Origin: Epiperipatus broadwayi
Taxonomy: Eukaryota > Animalia > Onychophora
Assembly (NCBI GenBank): GCA_028023455.1
Contig: JAQFVV010000003.1
Span: 23,746,001-23,810,000, forward strand
Direction: 5' to 3'
DNA length: 64,000 nt
Part shown: positions 2,870 to 63,530 of the stretch, piece by piece
Layout of the letters: each line of letters opens with the position of its first letter
Position numbering within the stretch: position 1 is the first letter of the stretch
Translations under genes and position numbers: made by a program
The notes under the pieces: model-generated
Database searches by the model: none
The model's input: the letters and a program-made list of their open reading frames with translations, nothing else
Told to the model about the DNA's origin: nothing

Positions 2870-4950
2870 ATGTATAATGAAAGGATTGAATGACCTTATA
2901 CAAACAACAGAATAATTTTTAGCATAAAAAAAAGACAAAACAAAACAAAACCCAACTTTTGAAGACCTAAGAAACATATTTATAGAGGATATTGATTCAA
3001 AAATCTTAGCTCGAATACTACTTAAAAAATTGAATAACTTGGTTAAAGACAAAATATCATCAGCACATCATGTTGTCAAGGGTAAAAGAGCCATAAATGC
3101 AGCTCTAAAATACAAGAAGCAATAAAGTATGCAAAGGAATTTAAGCTAATGCAGTACTTTGCAATTCAAATTGATTTTAAATCAGCATTTGACCTAGTTA
3201 ACTGGTCATATCTCATAAAAGCTCTGAACAATTTGATTAAAGAAGACAAATACCTAGAGAATGCTATAATGAATTCCATAAGAAATAATAGAATCTCCTA
3301 TTAAAATTATATGTGCAGATCTGAATTCTTCTTCCCAGAGAAAGGTATTCCTCAAGGTTCTCCATTGGCAGTGCTCTTATTTGCAATTTATGTAGACGCC
3401 ATGATTAAAGAAATAGACATTGGTTAATGGGATCTATCTATCACATTTGGATGTCACAATAGGAATCACAGCATTTACTGATATTATAATAATAGTAGAA
3501 AATAGTTATAATATTAATGCAGTGACGAATGCCCTAAAAAAAGTTTCAAGAAGTAACAAGTTCAGTAGTTCAATCTAACAAATCAGCAGCTTGGCAATTG
3601 GCAATGGGTAAAAGAATGTCATCCAAATTTATAACTTAGCTGAAGTCATTTCTTGGATTGCCATTATATATGTCAAAGGTATGTATGAATGGTCACTTAA
3701 ATCAGCTAATTATAAAAAAAAAAATTGTAGAGAGGATTAATAACTTCACATCATTCAAGTTTTATGAAGTGATGAGAACTCAATTGTTCAATGCAATTGC
3801 AACGGAGGCCCTTAGTTATTATGGTCCATGGGTAAAACTATATAATAAAACAATTCATAGTATAAAACAGATGGCTAAAAAATTCATCTGGGGGAAGAAA
3901 TCTAGACTACTATCAATGGCAATATTACAGTTACCTATTAATGAGGGAGGGCTTAACTTAGTTGATTCAAAAGTATATGTAAATTTTATTATTGTGTAAG
4001 AACATATTTCAATGTTATGAAGGATCAATGCTTCACTCCATCAACTGGTGATATAAAAATATATAGTGAAATAGGGGCAGAGAGAATATCTTATTTGGCA
4101 GATATGTTTATTGCATATAAGGACATACAAGATGAGCTAGATGTGCAAAACTTGGAAGGTATTAGATATAAGAAGGGGAGTAAAACCTGAAAATTCATGG
4201 ATAAACTGCTCAACAAAAGGGGTCATAGGTAAATTCCATTCAATTTATAAACCACAGCCATATATGAAATTCATATTCAAGTTGATCAATGAAGTTTTAC
4301 TGACTACAATATACATTAATAAAAGATTGGGAATGAGTTTAGATGAAACTTGTTCATTTTGTAAAAATAAACATGAAACATTTAAACATTTACTTGAAGA
4401 ATGCAGTGCTTTTGGGAGGCTAAGATACAGAGTTTTCCACACCCCAATGATAAATCTTAAAATGTTACTGAAGCAAAATGTAATAAAATTCAAACCACAT
4501 AATGCAATGGTGGTTGAAGAAACTTGACAATGATTGGGACAACTATTTTGGTACGTGTTTGAAATACTGGCTTAAGAAGGTTATAGAAACAGTATGGGGA
4601 GGAATTTCTATGACCACTTGTAAAATGTAGGAGCAAAAATAAACATATAAATAGAGAATGAGATAGTAAAAGTATTTAAAGTGGTAAAATAAAGAATTTC
4701 TCAAGAGAGAATAAAGATTCCATGTTTAAACTAGGAGTATGATTTGAATGGTATAACTCTAGGATTTAATAAGGAAATTTATATTAACTTTATAACAATG
4801 AGAGACTTATAGACTCACATTGTAGTGTTTTTGGGAAAAGTTCAGTAAATTTATGGTAATGGATAAAATGAATCAAAACTAATTTGTAGATATTTTCTGT
4901 ACATATTTAGAGGTTTGCTTAATAAAGTTTATTACTCAAAAAAAATAAAT
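2870..4950 (+). mobile_element. 5'-truncated, frameshifted L1/Tx1-clade non-LTR retrotransposon (RT plus C-terminal zinc knuckle)
   Basis: Translated motifs DSKILARIL, IDFKSAFDLVNWSYL (~3170), GIPQGSPLAVLLF (~3345), GGLNL (ORF 3658-3999) and CSFCKNKHETFKHLLEEC (ORF 4141-4527). AATAAA and an A-rich tail at 4921-4950. Confidence 0.9.
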
Positions 4951-28633: not shown

Positions 28634-28885
28634 TATCTTAATATAAACCAAGCATTGATTACATATATGTGCGGAAGATGATGATCCAGACCAACTGATG
28701 AGTGCTGCTTCAGCATGAAATATGTATGAGATCATTTGTGTTTTTCACATGTATGTGGTCATGTGATCAATTACATTGGATAAAGTGGGTGACTGTAAGG
28801 AGCTTGAAAATCTGGGTTCAAATCTCCTTGAATTAAAGTTATGTTAAGTATATACATTATACTTGTATTTCAATATTATTTAAGT
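28634..28885 (+). mobile_element. Family A copy: hammerhead (28681-28735) followed by a tRNA-like segment (28757-28827)
   Basis: CTGATGA at 28695, GTGCTG/CAGCAT, GAAA at 28717, 4-nt deletion in stem I 3'. TGGATAAAGTG and GGTTCAAATC (28815-28824). Confidence 0.85.
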
Positions 28886-31323: not shown

Positions 31324-31910
31324 GCCAATAAACATCACATGACCACCATCTCTTATGCTTGTGTGTAACTGTTGTTAAAACAGGCAAAACTCACTATATA
31401 TATTGCCACAAATATCAAGCTAGAGTAGTCAATGGATGCCAGAAGGCTTGTGCATAAAATCCCCATCTAGTGCCTACTCATCCTATATCCCCAGACTAGT
31501 TTCTGGTTTATGATCCTGCCTAATAGGATAGTGGTGGCTATGGTTATTAAAGAACCAAAGACACCGAAATGTATCGGTACTGAACTGGGTTCAGACCTAT
31601 ATGAATATATAAGCTAATGGGCTTGGATTGAAAACATTAAGGTGTTTTCAGTTTAAGACTCATAGTTTTGTAGTTAAATGGAGATAAAAGGTGGTTGCTG
31701 GTGGGTTGCATTAGATCTTAAGATTTAGGTGCAGTGCTCTCAGATCCAAGGCTCTTCACTGATGAAGGCCATAAGCCAGAAACTAGTCTGGTGATATTGG
31801 ATGAGTAGGCACTAGATGGGGATTTTATGCACAAGCCTTCTGGCATAACATTGACTACTTTAGCTTGTTGTGTGTGGCAATATATATATATAGTGAGTTT
31901 TGCCTGTTTT
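31324..31910. mobile_element. Family C: inverted tail arm plus tRNA-like head fused to a hammerhead; up to 15-bp TSD
   Basis: 31372-31512 is inverted relative to 31770-31915. AACAAATAACATTAA at 31309-31323 and 31911-31925. The left arm is ~48-53 nt longer. Confidence 0.9.
31744..31802 (+). ncRNA. Minimal type-I hammerhead (family C)
   Basis: ATCCAA..TCTTCA-CTGATGA(31759)-A-GGC cataa GCC-A-GAAA-CTAG-TC-TGGTGA..TTGGAT; palindromic stem III ACTAGT; predicted cleavage after 31788. Confidence 0.8.
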
Positions 31911-36105: not shown

Positions 36106-37401
36106 ATTTACTCAAAAAATAACAAATACAAATTTACTGTACCATATCTTTTTTTTTTTAAAATAAAATAAGTAGAATAAGACCAAAATTTCATCACAAT
36201 TAAATACACTCTAGATATTCTTTTTTTAAATAACTTTTTAGCAGTTTCTTTTACACCAAATTATGGCTTTCAAAATGTTTTGATGTTTTTAAGTCCATAT
36301 TGACTAGAATTTATCCTTATTTGCTATTACCCATTTCAATTATTATTTGAAGTTTAAACTAATGATTTACAATTCTTTTTTTTTTTTTATCACTTAATAA
36401 GATAATTTATGAAATTTCATAAAACTTAAGTTTATGTTTAGAAAACATTTTATTACATGAAGTACTTACTGTACACATCAAAGCTAAGAATAAAATATGC
36501 ATGCTTTTAATGTAAGCCAAAAAAAAAAACAACATTAATAAAAGAAATGGCATACATTACTCCAAAAAGCAATTATTTAACTTATGGACATAAAATAGGT
36601 TGTCAAAAAATGCTAAACTTTTACACTGCATAAAGATTGCAATAGAAAAAAATATATGAAACCAACTATATTAAATGTAATAAAGAAAAATTATGAATAT
36701 ATATAAAATCCATGCAATTAATCAATAATTGATCATTTAAATATGGATGAAAAGTTTACACAATATGTCTACATATATGTAAATCTTCACAATATTTTGT
36801 ATATATATATATATGGATACTTGCATATACATGGCTATGCATTATAATAAATATATTCATAATGTTTATGAAAATGTATGTATATGTTCCATTTATATGC
36901 ATATAAATATTGGTGGAGAGTATATATGTGTAAATTTGAATTTAAATAAATATTAATAGTAGCTAATAAAATAAATAATAATAAAAAACTATAACAATAA
37001 TTTCAGTTTGTCAATATAGATATAGCAATGCATAAATCATAATCATGTTTCATTTACTGTTCAATATATATATATATTGTAATCATTAAAACCAGTTAAC
37101 ACTTAGACAATTTCAATATCAATAACAATCAACAATTTCAAACTGTTGTCAAGGCAACCTCTTTTAACAATACAGATAGAATTCCACCTTTATTAATGGT
37201 TCATTATATTTATATAGACACTAAAGATTGCAACTTGACTTCAGAGATTGAAATTATTGATAGAAAAAAGTTTAAATAAACCTCTTTAAAAAGGTAAATA
37301 TAACATGTTCTGAATGCAGACCAATAAATAGTCAATTATAATATTACAAACTACAATTATAATTTTCAAATTGCATCCAAAGTATTACTTAAATAATAAG
37401 T

Positions 37402-38084
37402 AGTAATTAATTTATTGAGCGCACAAAAAGCATATGTAAATACTTTAAACAGGCTATAACCTGTATTCAATGCACTTTAAAATTTGTAATAATCAAGCAT
37501 ATTTTGCTGATAGAGAGAACCTTCCAAACAATGAACAAGATGCTTCAGATTTGCCTATATAAGTGGACATTTAGGTTAAAGATAAGACAGCCACTCTTAT
37601 CTTTATAAAACTCGCTATCTTGTGTCTTGGTTTGGAAGGTTCCTTCTATAGGCAAAATATGCTTGATTATTACGAATTTTAAAGCACATTGAATACAGGT
37701 TATAGCCTGTTTAAAGTATTTACATATGCTTTCTGTGTGCTTAGTAAATTAATTACTACTCTTTAATAGTTTATAGAATTTCCAACATTAAGATCATAAT
37801 ATTAACTCGCTGTATATCGCAAGATTTCATGTAAGTTAATTTGTAAAGGATATAGTGGACTTAAACAGTGGAGAAAAACAACTACTTCATGCTTCCAAAT
37901 CAAGATGCTTCAGATTCGCCTATATAAGTGGACATTTAGGTTAAAGATAAGACAGCTGCTCTTATCTTTATAAAAGTCACTATTTTGTGTCGTAGTTTGG
38001 AAGGTTTCCTCTATCGGCAAAATACGCTTGATTACTATGAATTTTAAAGCACATTGAATACAGGTTATAGCCTGTTTAAAGTAT
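37402..38084. mobile_element. TATA-hairpin family element 3: short inverted arm plus 1.5 copies of a 365-bp unit, 13-bp TSD
   Basis: TTAAATAATAAGT at 37389-37401 and 38085-38097. CAAGATGCTTCAG at 37536 and 37901. 37402-37530 is inverted relative to 37630-37757. Confidence 0.9.
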
Positions 38085-41051
38085 TTAAATAATAAGTGTA
38101 TATACACATATATGAAAGTTATAATTAAAAAAATCTTGATGTCTTCATGTATAATGCTTGATTATATATCTAATATATATTAACATTTACATACATTCAC
38201 ACAGAAAAAAGAATAACAAAACGAAACATTTTGTATTAGAGTAATATATTTCTTGTGAATAATCTACATAGATGTTTTTTTTAAATTAATAAAATACTAA
38301 ATTTTTTCAAACTAAATTAGACAACGTATGCACAAGCAATATTTATAGATTACAATTGTTTTAAGCTTATATATACCATTAAGAGAAATTAAAAATCAAC
38401 TGAAAATAATATTTGATAAAAGTTATTTTATGAAAAAAATCTAGTTATTCTTAAAGAAATGAAAAATGAGTTACGAGCTTAACATCAATAAGGGTAAGGT
38501 ATTTCCTCCAACCTAGGTGAAGGCCAAGATTGCATTACAATTGTAAATTTTTGTTGTTTTTACAATCAGTGAGTCAACATTCATTTCACTGATTAATCTT
38601 GACTTTCATAGTAACCTGAAAAATTTTCTACACTAAATTAACCTAGAAACATGTTGGGACATAGCAGGTAAATGTGCTAACCATTGTATCACAAAATCTT
38701 TTATAAAGAAACTGGTCAAATGCTTTATTAAATATAATGTGTGCTATTGATGAAACATGGCATTTTATCAGGTCTTTTAAAAAATAAATTTATTGGTATA
38801 AATATAACAAAAGAAACAGTACTAACACTTTACATATAGAACTTTACTAATAGAAATATATTTTATTTCAAATTTTCAAAAATGACTATCAGTTTTGATT
38901 GCCCAACAGTCTTCTTCAGAACTCTAATATACACAATATATATATATAAGTATTTTAGAACAACAAAATTAGATGTGAATTATAAAAAATGTATAGGATT
39001 CAGTGAATTATAATGCATCTTTCAATAAAAAAAAAAGGCAAAATAATTGATTACAATTTGAAATATATTGATTGCTAAATAGAAAAATGTATACATACAT
39101 TTATATGCAACCGCTTGGAAATAAATTAAACATTAAACATACACTATTGGTCATTTACTTGCACTTATCAATAACACATGTCTGAATTTTGGTTTCTTTT
39201 CATATGATTACAGATATAGATTGCTAATATATTTATATACATTCATAATAAAAAATTAATATTGGACAGTTTTTTTCCTCACTTCATTAATCATTTAAAG
39301 TGTAATGATTGTTTATTTTCATTTTTTTACATGGAATTGTTTTGTATATAATTTATTAAAACTCACTGTTTATTTATACATGGTATGAGGATTTTAAGTA
39401 TATCTTAAAATAAAATTATATTTGAAAAAAGAGAGATGAAGTTGAGTTATTCCATGTGTTTAGATATAATTAATCTTTAACTGAAGTCTAATTAATATTT
39501 ATATCTGGGCTAGATATAATCATTAGTTTAATAAATGATTAATAATAATCATTAATTAATTCATCTGAAGTGGTGCTAGGGTCAAAGTTTTTGAGAGCAG
39601 AAACCATTTTAAAATAAAAATGTAATATGTATGTGTAATATGTGGTTATTCTACTGTATTCTTGTGAAGATAAAATGAACTTTAAGTTTGAAGCTTTCAA
39701 CCAATATAGTATCTATCCATCTGTTTCCTCACTTGTCCTGAGAGGATATTGTTAGAATGATGGATTAAAGGCTAAGTGTTTTTAAATTGAAACTCAAGTT
39801 ATTATTTCTGGTGTGCAAGCAACTTGTGACTTTCTGGGTAATTAATTGTTCCATTATTTTATTTCTCATTACATGATTTGTATCTGTCACATCCCACATG
39901 CTTTCCAGAAGCAGATTATTTCAGTCTATTTCATTGATGCCATGTGTTTATATGCTTGTATAATCAGTAAATGTTAGATTCTAATATTTATAAGTTTAAC
40001 CTTCATTGCTAGTCCATCTACATTCACAGTATAATTTCTGGTTTATAATCTTGTTAGGGAGGAACTTCAATCTGGATCTAATGCATCTGAATTCAATGAC
40101 TATGAAGTGAGATATCATTCAAACTAATAATAAATAAGTCATGGAAATTAATAAAAATAATCTCAACTTTATTTTCCTTAACAAATAAACAAAATACTTT
40201 ATAGAAAAAATTGTACAATGTTGAGCCTTAATTTTAATTATAGATAAGTAAATATTTCTTCATTATGATCAAATGCTCTGTATTGTAGTTCTAGGAAATA
40301 AAAATTGTATGATCAATAGAAAGAACTAATCTCTATTCTAGTGCATTTTCTGTTAAGCTTGAGAAATCAGTGATTACTAGAAGGTAATATATTTAAATTC
40401 CCTGATTAGTTTCCAGTTTTTGTATTTATCAATAAGGTTTGGGATTCAAAACTAGAAGTAATTCATTTACATATTTAGCAATCACCTTTAATTATATTTT
40501 ACTGTTCAAGATAAAAGCTTGAAATACAAAACAATCTTAAGGCTTTGAAACCAAGTCAACATGTTTGAACAGTTGTATAAATTTGATTCCAAATGAGTAA
40601 TTATATATTTTAATATCTCATTTATTAATATTAATTAACTGTAAGATCCTTTTCTCCATCTAAGAATATTAATTTCAACAACAGCTGGTTGTCATATCCT
40701 CAAAATCTTAGGATATTTTGAATTTTAGTTTTTAGCTAATAAAGTGAAATGAAGTTTAAGATAGCATCTAGATACTTTATTTTCAGTTTTGAATATCAAA
40801 CCTCATTGATAAAAATAAAAGCCAGAAAAGATCTGGGGATAGTGTTTTCAATGTGCTCTTATCTGGTAATCACTGATTATTCAATTTTACTATGGATGGC
40901 ATCAGAATAAAGAGCTGCTTTTATATTATCATATGTTTTGTAAGTTAAGGAATTGAATGATTTACTGTTATTATATCACAGCAAATGAAACTATACCCTG
41001 GAAAACAATTTTGATTTAGTTATTCACAAATCATTTCTGTGCTACCTTGTG

Positions 41052-41200: not shown

Positions 41201-41351
41201 TTCCAATAACAAAAAATAAACACATTAAAAACTTTTTCAATAATGGTATTTAAATGATGAATAAAATCAGATTTATTTAGCAAACCATTGGTAATTTTGT
41301 TATTAACTGATCGCTTATGTGTGACAAGACATGATTACTATAACATTTAAT

Positions 41352-41540
41352 ATATATTAAGGCTACAATCTTAAGACAATGCGCCTAAATGCGATAGTCG
41401 GGACCTCTACAAATCTTAACACGAGATTAACGGTTTGAAGATTTGTAGAGGTCCCTACTGTCGCATTTAGGCCCATAGTCTTAAAGTTATAGCCTTAATA
41501 TATCTTACTTACGTAATGATGCGCTTTATAAATTATTAAT
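41352..41540. mobile_element. TATA-hairpin family element 4 (short, 3' end only): inverted pair, 37-nt tail, 13-bp TSD
   Basis: TATAACATTTAAT at 41339-41351 and 41541-41553. Homologous to the 3' part of the 62393-63313 unit (AAGA..TGTAGAGGTCCCTAC...GCCTTA...TGCG.TTT.ATAAA). Confidence 0.85.
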
Positions 41541-42290
41541 TATAACATTTAATTTAATCCAAGACATATTTGGTTAAACATCAATAAAAAACATTTAATA
41601 ATACATTCATCGTTATTCCCTTAAGAATTAAGAGACTGTCTGTAGATAATCATCCATCCTCCCTTTTTGAAATCAAGAAATATAAATATTTTTTGTACTT
41701 CCACTATTATTCTTATATCTATTATTAGTTCAAATAAGAATTAGTTTGTTTTAGAAGCAATTTTTTATTTATTTCTCTTTTTCTCTCTTATTATAAAAAA
41801 AATTCCATAACTATTCTTATATTCTACAATATTTCACCTGCACATAAACAAAACATTATTTCATATACCGTATACCCTAAATTATTTAATGCTTTATTAA
41901 TTGAATGACTATAACATAACTCAACTACTGTCAGAATTTACTTTTGTAATCACTCATTGTTCATATTTTTTAGTTTACTGTCCTCTCTTTTTCTGAAGTT
42001 CCTGTCTGCTACACTTTGGAGATTTTTTCTTTAAAGGGGCGGGGGGGGGGGGGACTGCAAATAAACCCAATTAAAAAATTTATAATAAATATTTTTTTTT
42101 TTTTTTTACCTATTTTTAGGTTTTGTTCTTTCCACTTCTAATTAAACATAATTATGATTAATTAAACCAGCTTGTTCATTTCGTATCAAAATTCTATAAA
42201 ATCAGATTTCTGTATCCAGCATAAACAAACAAACAAACAAACAAAAAAAAAACTACAAACAGTAAAATAAAAACAGAGACACTACCTCAC

Positions 42291-56522: not shown

Positions 56523-56900
<378 letters not shown>

Positions 56901-61714: not shown

Positions 61715-63530
61715 TTTTTATATAAATATTAGAGGGATGCAAACCAAATGTGCTAAAATTAAAGAATTCTTGGGAATGGAACACTTTAATATTATATTTC
61801 TTATAAAAACTTAGTTAAGTCAACAATTTTGTGATTGTTATTTCCTTAATAATAGATTTAATATTTTAAGAACAGACAGATCTATGGAAAATGTTACTTG
61901 AGGAGGTGGTGTTCTTATTGCTATTCATAATTATAATTTTTATAAAGATCTTCAGTTCTTCTTTTTGTGAATCTACATGGTGTGAAATTACAATTTTAAA
62001 TTTATCTTAGAAAATATATATCTTAAACCAATTTTCTCACTTTTATAATTTAAATATCTTTTGACCTCATTTGAAGATTTTTTGATTGGCTATAATAATA
62101 TTATTATTACTGCTTAATTTAAACATTCCAGATTTATTTCAGAATAGAATTACTACACACTTAATTTGTCTCCTATAGCTTTTAGATGTTAAGGTTTTGT
62201 AAATTTTTTGGGCTTAAGCAATATAACCCATTTGTTAATTCTTCTCAACACACTTTAGACTATGTTCTATGTAATTCATTAGCAGGCAGTAATTTTCATT
62301 TTATTTCTGTTACTTTTTCTATTGTTGATCACCATCCATCTATTGAGTTTTATATTAAGATATGTCATTCAAAAGTTATTTATTCTAATATTAATATTTA
62401 CTAAGGCTGTAGGAATAAGCGTCTGAAAAATTCAAAGGTAGGGACCTCTACAGGTCTTAGCCACAAGCTTACGCTAGGAAGAAAAGAGGGAAACCCCTCT
62501 TTACTTCAACTTACTTTTATATATGAATAGGTGAAGCTGAAGTGGTTAGATCTAAGAGTGTGAAGCTATTCAATACTTCACTAATTAAGTCCACAATTCT
62601 TATCATACATTAATACTCACAAAATCTTACAATTTACAATGAGTCAATGGAAAGATTTTATAGTAAGAAATCTATTACGATAATTTAAAGTTGTAATTAT
62701 AAATTTTATTAAACGCACATTATTATATTATGTAATATTTACTAAGTCTGTAACCTTTAGGAATAAGCATCTGAAAAATTCGAAGGTAGGGACCTCTACA
62801 GGTCTTAGCCACAAGCTTATGCTAGGAAGAAAAGAGGGAAACCCCTCTTTACTTCAACCTACTTTTATACTTTAAACTTTGAATTTTTCAGACGCTTATT
62901 CCTAAAGGTTACAGCCTTAGTAAATATTACTTAATATAATAATGTGCATTTAATAAAATTTATAATTAGAACTATAAATTATCGTAATAGATTTCTTACT
63001 ATAAGATCTTTCCATTGACTCATTGTAAATTGTAAGATTTCATGAGTATTAATGTATAATAAGAATTGTGGACTTAATTAGTGAAGTATTAAATAGCTTC
63101 ACACTCTTAGATCTAACCACTTCAGCTTCACCTATTCATATATAAAAGTAGGTTGAAGTAAAGAGGGGTTTCCCTCTTTTCTTCCTAGCGTAAGCTTGTG
63201 GCTAAGACCTGTAGAGGTCCATACCTTCAAATTTTTCAGACGCTTATTCCTAAAGGTTACCGCCTTAGTAAATATTACTTAATATAATAATGTGCGTTTA
63301 ATAAAATTTATAATTATTCTAATATTTTAAAAGAGATTATAGGAAAGATAATTATGTTGATTTTTGCAATAAATTTTCTAAATTGGAATTCATTGTATTC
63401 CTATAATGATGTGAATCATTGCTTAGATTATTTGTTTCAGATTTTTAATAGTTTTATTGATTTATATATTCCCAGTAAATTCTCTTTCCATAAGGCCCCA
63501 ATCCTAGGTTTCATACCCTTTCATTAAGAT
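61715..63530 (+). mobile_element. CR1/Jockey-type LINE endonuclease region, interrupted by the 62393-63313 insertion
   Basis: YINIRGMQTK, NIIFLIKT*L (cf. DII.LTETWL), RTDRS..GGGVLIAI, TLDYVLCN and VDHHP; the sequence resumes after the TSD at 63314. Confidence 0.85.
62393..63313. mobile_element. TATA-hairpin family element 2: 348-bp unit, ~1.35 units inverted plus ~1.25 units direct, 37-nt tail, 13-bp TSD
   Basis: TTATTCTAATATT at 62380-62392 and 63314-63326. GGGACCTCTACAG at 62441 and 62789. CAGACGC at 62889 and 63237. Confidence 0.92.

Follow-up and report, generated by a model that had tools for sequence, protein, structure and literature searches.

A 348-bp repeat family of Epiperipatus broadwayi with Penelope-like insertion anatomy but no open reading frame or detectable hammerhead

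The stretch of Epiperipatus broadwayi DNA analyzed here (64,000 nt in total, referred to as the window) contains, at 62393–63313, a 921-bp insert composed of two head-to-head arms of a 348-bp unit. With a probability of roughly 0.8, we interpret this insert as a single integration of a non-autonomous 348-nt retroelement, devoid of both an open reading frame (ORF) and a hammerhead ribozyme, that was mobilized in trans by a Penelope-like element (PLE). The 348-bp family belongs to the known class of non-autonomous PLE-dependent elements; its anatomy resembles that of a retrozyme, but it is not a retrozyme.

The features of the insert and its relatives are listed in Table 1. A repeat search detected two inverted pairs, 62407–62785 with 62877–63255 (379 nt) and 62694–62869 with 63141–63316 (176 nt), each 96% complementary, as well as direct repeats with a spacing of 348 inside each arm. 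The likeness is 94–96% between the arms and 96% between units within an arm, and the left arm carries a 7-nt deletion relative to the other copies. This directly observed anatomy bears out an earlier note on the same DNA, which had described a 13-bp target-site duplication (TSD), two arms longer than one unit that start at different phases, and a right (direct) arm that ends 37 nt past the left (inverted) one. The inner ends of the two arms indeed differ. The comparison with Penelope-type insertions made in that note also holds, as the TSD, the head-to-head arms, each with its own 3′ end, and the 37-nt tail on one arm conform to this geometry.

Table 1. Positions of the insert features and of related insertions within the window
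Feature	Position	Strand	Description
TSD, copy 1	62380–62392		TTATTCTAATATT; exact 13-mer, repeated as copy 2
Left arm	62393–62869	−	About 1.4 units; RNA sense on the minus strand; no tail
Filler at the head-to-head junction	62870–62876		7 nt, unlike both arms (four-copy alignment)
Right arm	62877–63313	+	1.26 units; RNA sense on the plus strand; unit boundary at 62968/62969
3′ module	63187–63313	+	About 130 nt; common to 41352–41540 and 37402–38084 (alignment, nhmmer)
Most conserved core	63210–63224	+	TGTAGAGGTCCCTAC; five matches in the window against 0.02 expected
Tail, right arm only	63277–63313	+	37 nt between the two 3′ end points
TSD, copy 2	63314–63326		TTATTCTAATATT; exact 13-mer
Second insertion, 365-bp-unit family	37402–38084	+	133-nt inverted left arm and 1.5-unit right arm
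TSDs of the second insertion	37389–37401 and 38085–38097		TTAAATAATAAGT; exact, 13 bp
Third insertion, distant subfamily	41352–41540	+	189 bp; two short inverted arms consisting of the 3′ module alone
TSDs of the third insertion	41339–41351 and 41541–41553		TATAACATTTAAT; exact, 13 bp
Hammerhead-bearing inverted insertion, another family	31324–31910		Same geometry; left arm with a tail of about 47 nt

Nearly all differences among the four partial units of the insert are confined to a single copy and lie mostly at CpG, and the only site of difference shared between them is also a CpG. This pattern indicates that the units were essentially identical when inserted. Such identity would fit equally well with the transcript of a young, homogeneous array and with rolling-circle copying of a circle. 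Among copies of the 348-bp repeat and its relatives, differences are mostly CpG-to-TpG or CpG-to-CpA, a decay which suggests that the repeat is, or formerly was, methylated in the germ line.

The unit has no apparent coding capacity, in agreement with the earlier note. Its longest stop-free stretch spans 63 codons, and the 48-aa peptide at 63135–63278, the sole unit peptide searched, has no homologue in a protein-database search. As a 348-bp repeat without an ORF for a PLE reverse transcriptase or a GIY-YIG domain, the element is non-autonomous; no PLE ORF is present within the 64,000-nt window either. Pattern scans of metagenomes for the core and for the 3′ end returned 0 matches. When the unit was examined as a possible tRNA-derived SINE, ARAGORN found no tRNA-like head. 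T runs of 4–5 occur inside the unit on both strands, and the only B-box-like match is a weak TTCGAA. The latter is part of a weak tRNA-promoter-like pair at 63186–63235 (+), in which TAGC...GTGG is followed 40 nt downstream by TTCGAA and directly thereafter by TTTTT. This pair is probably a non-working Pol III unit.

BLAST and nhmmer searches of the 64,000-nt window with the 348-bp unit identified two related insertions, one from a family with a 365-bp unit and one from a distant subfamily. The former bears a 38-nt tail on its left arm only, and the latter a 38-nt tail on its right arm only. The insertion anatomy therefore recurs threefold: each of the three insertions is flanked by an exact 13-bp TSD, has its arms joined head to head so that both 3′ ends face outward, and carries a tail on one arm only, of 37, 38, and 38 nt, respectively. 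Across the three insertions, the outer ends map to a common pair of homologous phases, and the inner (5′) ends of the six arms differ. Target-primed reverse transcription yields fixed 3′ ends and variable 5′ ends. The fixed outer ends and variable inner ends thus identify the outer ends as the 3′ ends of the cDNAs, and the RNA sense accordingly reads outward. The hammerhead-bearing insertion of another family serves as an orientation control, in which the ribozyme, a canonical minimal type I hammerhead (CUGAUGA-AGGCCAUAAGCCA-GAAACUAGUC) at about 31759 on the plus strand, resides on the strand with 3′ ends outward. Arms of 1.26, 1.4, and 1.5 units, along with the tandem-junction contigs described below, reveal a partially tandem, pseudo-LTR-like organization. 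The three targets are AT-rich unique sequence or a LINE relic, and none is a (TA)n microsatellite. At the head-to-head junction of the insertion at 37402–38084, a TTCCAAA microhomology is observed.

The empty site of the 921-bp insert can be reconstructed from its surroundings. The flanks join in one reading frame across it (...KVIYSN/ILKE...), and two diverged paralogues in the window align without gaps straight across the insertion junction. The flanks contain LINE endonuclease-like motifs, and a protein atlas provided a lead to an Exo_endo_phos_2/endonuclease-RT cluster, while Pfam searches of the flank pieces gave no match. The flank can thus reasonably be read as a LINE relic. Of the earlier proposal that the insert interrupts a CR1 relic, the interruption of a LINE-like flank that reads through the empty site is upheld, but the CR1 label is a putative assignment. 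Elsewhere in the window, a 128-aa ORF at 4141–4527 (+) contains a zf-RVT domain (E 3.7e-6) and represents a relic of the C-terminal region of a LINE reverse transcriptase. A (TCTG)n microsatellite of about 75 copies with 98% matches occupies 56525–56822.

The family is very high-copy and usually tandem. In one DNA run, 5,324 contig pieces display at least 85% identity to the 348-bp unit, 543 of them at least 99%. The summed depth reaches 10^5–10^6 over most of the unit, as compared with about 10^2–10^4 on the repeated LINE flank, a ratio in the hundreds. The tandem junction (63316 to 62970) is spanned by contigs of the DNA run and by contigs of X7, one of the runs labelled 'RNA?', and sequence words of the family are present in public runs of four organisms. 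In two 'RNA?' runs, the repeat is present with a unit-to-flank depth ratio close to that of the DNA run. Since the ratios agree, these runs may be genome skims or carry DNA, and their depth was rejected as proof of transcription. No pile-ups of molecule starts or ends were reported in the public runs.

The 3′ module is the part of the unit shared by all three insertions. In the public runs, it is also joined to other 5′ bodies, with loose ends at 63186, 63187, and 63203, and this sharing accounts for a depth peak at 63185–63220 in three runs. Among the variants listed for these runs, none with a share of at least 10% lies at 63203–63220 or in the last 55 nt. The invariance of the last 55 nt among these variants is as expected for a cis-acting recognition region and may reflect one. 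The core hairpin GACCU-GUAG-AGGUC is replaced by GAUUU-GUAG-AGGUC in the relative at 41438, in which the resulting G-U pairs are kept in the outward orientation only. RNAalifold found no consensus structure in an eight-sequence alignment. Each of the three families allows a hairpin immediately before the putative start site 1 and a long-range helix that pairs a segment upstream of this site with the central part of the tail. In the 348-bp family, however, the register is shifted, and the apparent compensatory changes are CpG transitions. Because of this shift, and because CpG decay confounds the covariation, these pairings were not counted as evidence. The 3′ module gives no more than a hint of structural covariation.

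The anatomy closely matches that reported for PLEs, whose insertions are 5′-truncated and frequently show a partial tandem arrangement, in many cases with an inverted 5′-truncated copy in front (Craig et al. 2021, PMC8557442). They carry a tail of 30–40 bp at one end only (PMC8557442). Among them, Naiad and Chlamys lack hammerheads and show the same insertion anatomy, and non-autonomous derivatives have been described for Chlamys (PMC8557442). A biochemical framework is provided by the Poseidon element PAc: at AT-rich (ATT) sites, its protein cleaves the two strands of the target and extends them both (Frangieh et al. 2024, PMC11167929). PAc initiates reverse transcription from two adjacent sites internal to an unprocessed multi-copy RNA, and its tail is the sequence between these two start sites (PMC11167929). 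Hammerhead cleavage is dispensable for insertion by PAc in vitro (PMC11167929).

Following the PAc/Poseidon model, we infer the enzyme, its template, and the transcription of that template as follows. A PLE protein would bind the conserved 3′ module of a multi-unit RNA, which may have arisen by read-through transcription across a tandem array or, with less certainty, have been circular. The protein would then make two cuts 13 bp apart, one in each strand of an AT-rich target, and each 3′-OH would prime reverse transcription at one of two adjacent internal starts separated by 37 nt. The use of two start sites at this distance would place a tail on one arm only, and the outer end of the left arm would correspond to the upstream start. 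Each cDNA would run past one unit, and the two cDNAs would finally be joined head to head with 7 nt of filler. By analogy with PAc, every feature of the three insertions, including arms longer than one unit, would follow from this scheme. The earlier suggestion that a multimeric or circular small RNA was copied by a PLE reverse transcriptase is thereby supported in part: a template longer than one unit and the Penelope geometry argue for it, while the enzyme and the circle are its more conjectural elements.

The ribozyme search addressed whether such an RNA might be processed. Rfam scans (Rfam 15), applied to the region at E≤10 and to the whole window, yielded no ribozyme; they returned only matches to miRNA models, artefacts that arise from the inverted repeat. 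With these settings, the canonical minimal hammerhead at about 31759 also goes undetected, even at E≤10 (cmscan). As this clear hammerhead escaped detection, the negative result from Rfam is weak, and custom scans were therefore written. These scans, which admitted common population variants from the public reads, were applied to both strands of the three families and detected neither a CUGANGA nor an AUGANUA core that is succeeded by GAAA and could form a plausible helix II. As controls, they recovered the canonical hammerhead at 31759 and listed an A3:U8 motif at about 22146, the latter with 0 helix-II base pairs. The near-cores CUGAAAA and AUGAAUA were rejected, since they occur on the antisense strand only and without helices, and AUGAAUA is not kept in the 365-bp family. 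The absence of a hammerhead core from either strand, as stated in the earlier note, thus stands. Separately, a hammerhead-like motif at 28695–28735 (+) comprises CUGAUGA, a 6-bp helix II (GUGCUG/CAGCAU), GAAA, and a possible 7-bp helix I (GAUGAUC/GAUCAUU), and is absent from the Rfam results.

The strongest competing explanation posits that monomers are processed by an unrecognised self-cleaving motif or a host nuclease, circularised, and copied in rolling-circle fashion by the PLE enzyme. Arms longer than one unit and units identical at insertion fit a rolling circle, and the 15-nt core is strongly conserved between diverged families. The window also harbours a hammerhead example at 31759. 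Furthermore, the whole 348-nt unit is predicted to fold more stably than its shuffled counterparts, whichever strand is considered (z −3.6 and −4.2), but the 3′ module alone has no unusual stability by the same comparison. The lack of any known ribozyme also weighs against this explanation, as do inner 5′ ends without a common phase and the lack of reported pile-ups of molecule ends. Moreover, internal initiation on an unprocessed multi-copy RNA accounts for all the observations. Considered together, these points render such processing unlikely. With six inner ends at different phases, no end pile-ups, and an internal mode of initiation that needs no defined RNA 3′ end, no RNA processing is required. 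The unrecognised processing mechanism invoked in the earlier note is accordingly superfluous, as internal starts of reverse transcription on unprocessed multi-copy RNA suffice (PMC11167929). In its strict form, the family would be a genuine counterpart of retrozymes, whose unit-length or circular RNA would be generated without a hammerhead, through a self-cleaving motif not yet described or through a site for a dedicated host nuclease, located within or close to the invariant core at 63187–63224; we regard this version as very unlikely.

Insertion by a LINE, with the unit acting as a SINE-like partner of CR1 or another LINE and inverted by twin priming, is highly improbable. LINE relics are common in the window, and twin priming does give inversions. 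However, it inverts the more 5′ segment of one RNA, whereas both arms of the insert cover the same 3′ region. The insert also lacks a poly(A) or LINE-type 3′ repeat, and a tail of 30–40 nt is specific to PLEs. Least credible of all is a rearrangement of a satellite repeat at the DNA level, by foldback or palindrome formation and without an RNA intermediate. In its favour, the very abundant family is tandemly arranged and the locus forms a near-perfect inverted repeat; against it stand the 37–38-nt asymmetry and the shared pair of outer phases in three insertions, each with an exact 13-bp TSD, and the uninterrupted empty site in the paralogues.

Mobilization in trans by a PLE, as favoured here, places the 348-bp family among several known systems. 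Like the animal non-LTR retrozymes (Cervera & de la Peña 2020, PMC7229834; Li et al. 2026 preprint, 10.64898/2026.07.22.740005), the family consists of ORF-less, AT-rich tandem units within the range of 170–400 nt, and it shares with them a high copy number, presumed PLE dependence, and TSDs of more than 4 bp. In contrast, those retrozymes possess a type I hammerhead in every unit, and the 348-bp family has none on either strand. Chlamys derivatives such as MRC1 and the Naiad and Chlamys PLEs likewise lack a canonical hammerhead and form pseudo-LTR or head-to-tail multicopy insertions and inverted copies with a 30–40-bp tail (PMC8557442). The non-autonomous copies have only the 3′ end in common with their partner (PMC8557442). 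As a point of difference, the non-autonomous derivatives were reported for Chlamys of green algae (PMC8557442). The (TA)n microsatellites favoured by Naiads also contrast with the three targets here, which are AT-rich without being microsatellites. The resemblance to PAc extends to two end points, here 37 nt apart and equivalent to the PAc tail between its two start sites, the use of both strands, AT-rich targets containing ATT, a multi-copy RNA, and independence from hammerhead cleavage; PAc is autonomous and from a vertebrate, whereas the present unit is 348 nt and non-coding, with a putative enzyme acting in trans. The short non-autonomous Penelope elements annotated in Heliconius butterflies (PMC6685494) are similarly short and non-coding, and are given there as a repeat-annotation category only.

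Hammerhead-less families of this kind escape retrozyme searches that begin from the ribozyme, and they will probably be mistaken for satellites or foldbacks during assembly and annotation. The compact 3′ module, of about 130 nt, is a candidate for the smallest cis element that PLE recognition and internal initiation require. The multi-unit inverted insertions without a hammerhead, found in a genome that also contains sister families with hammerheads, agree with the dispensability of hammerhead cleavage in vitro. The 348-bp family would thus represent a natural and very abundant case in which the PLE machinery moves a short non-coding RNA without a hammerhead.
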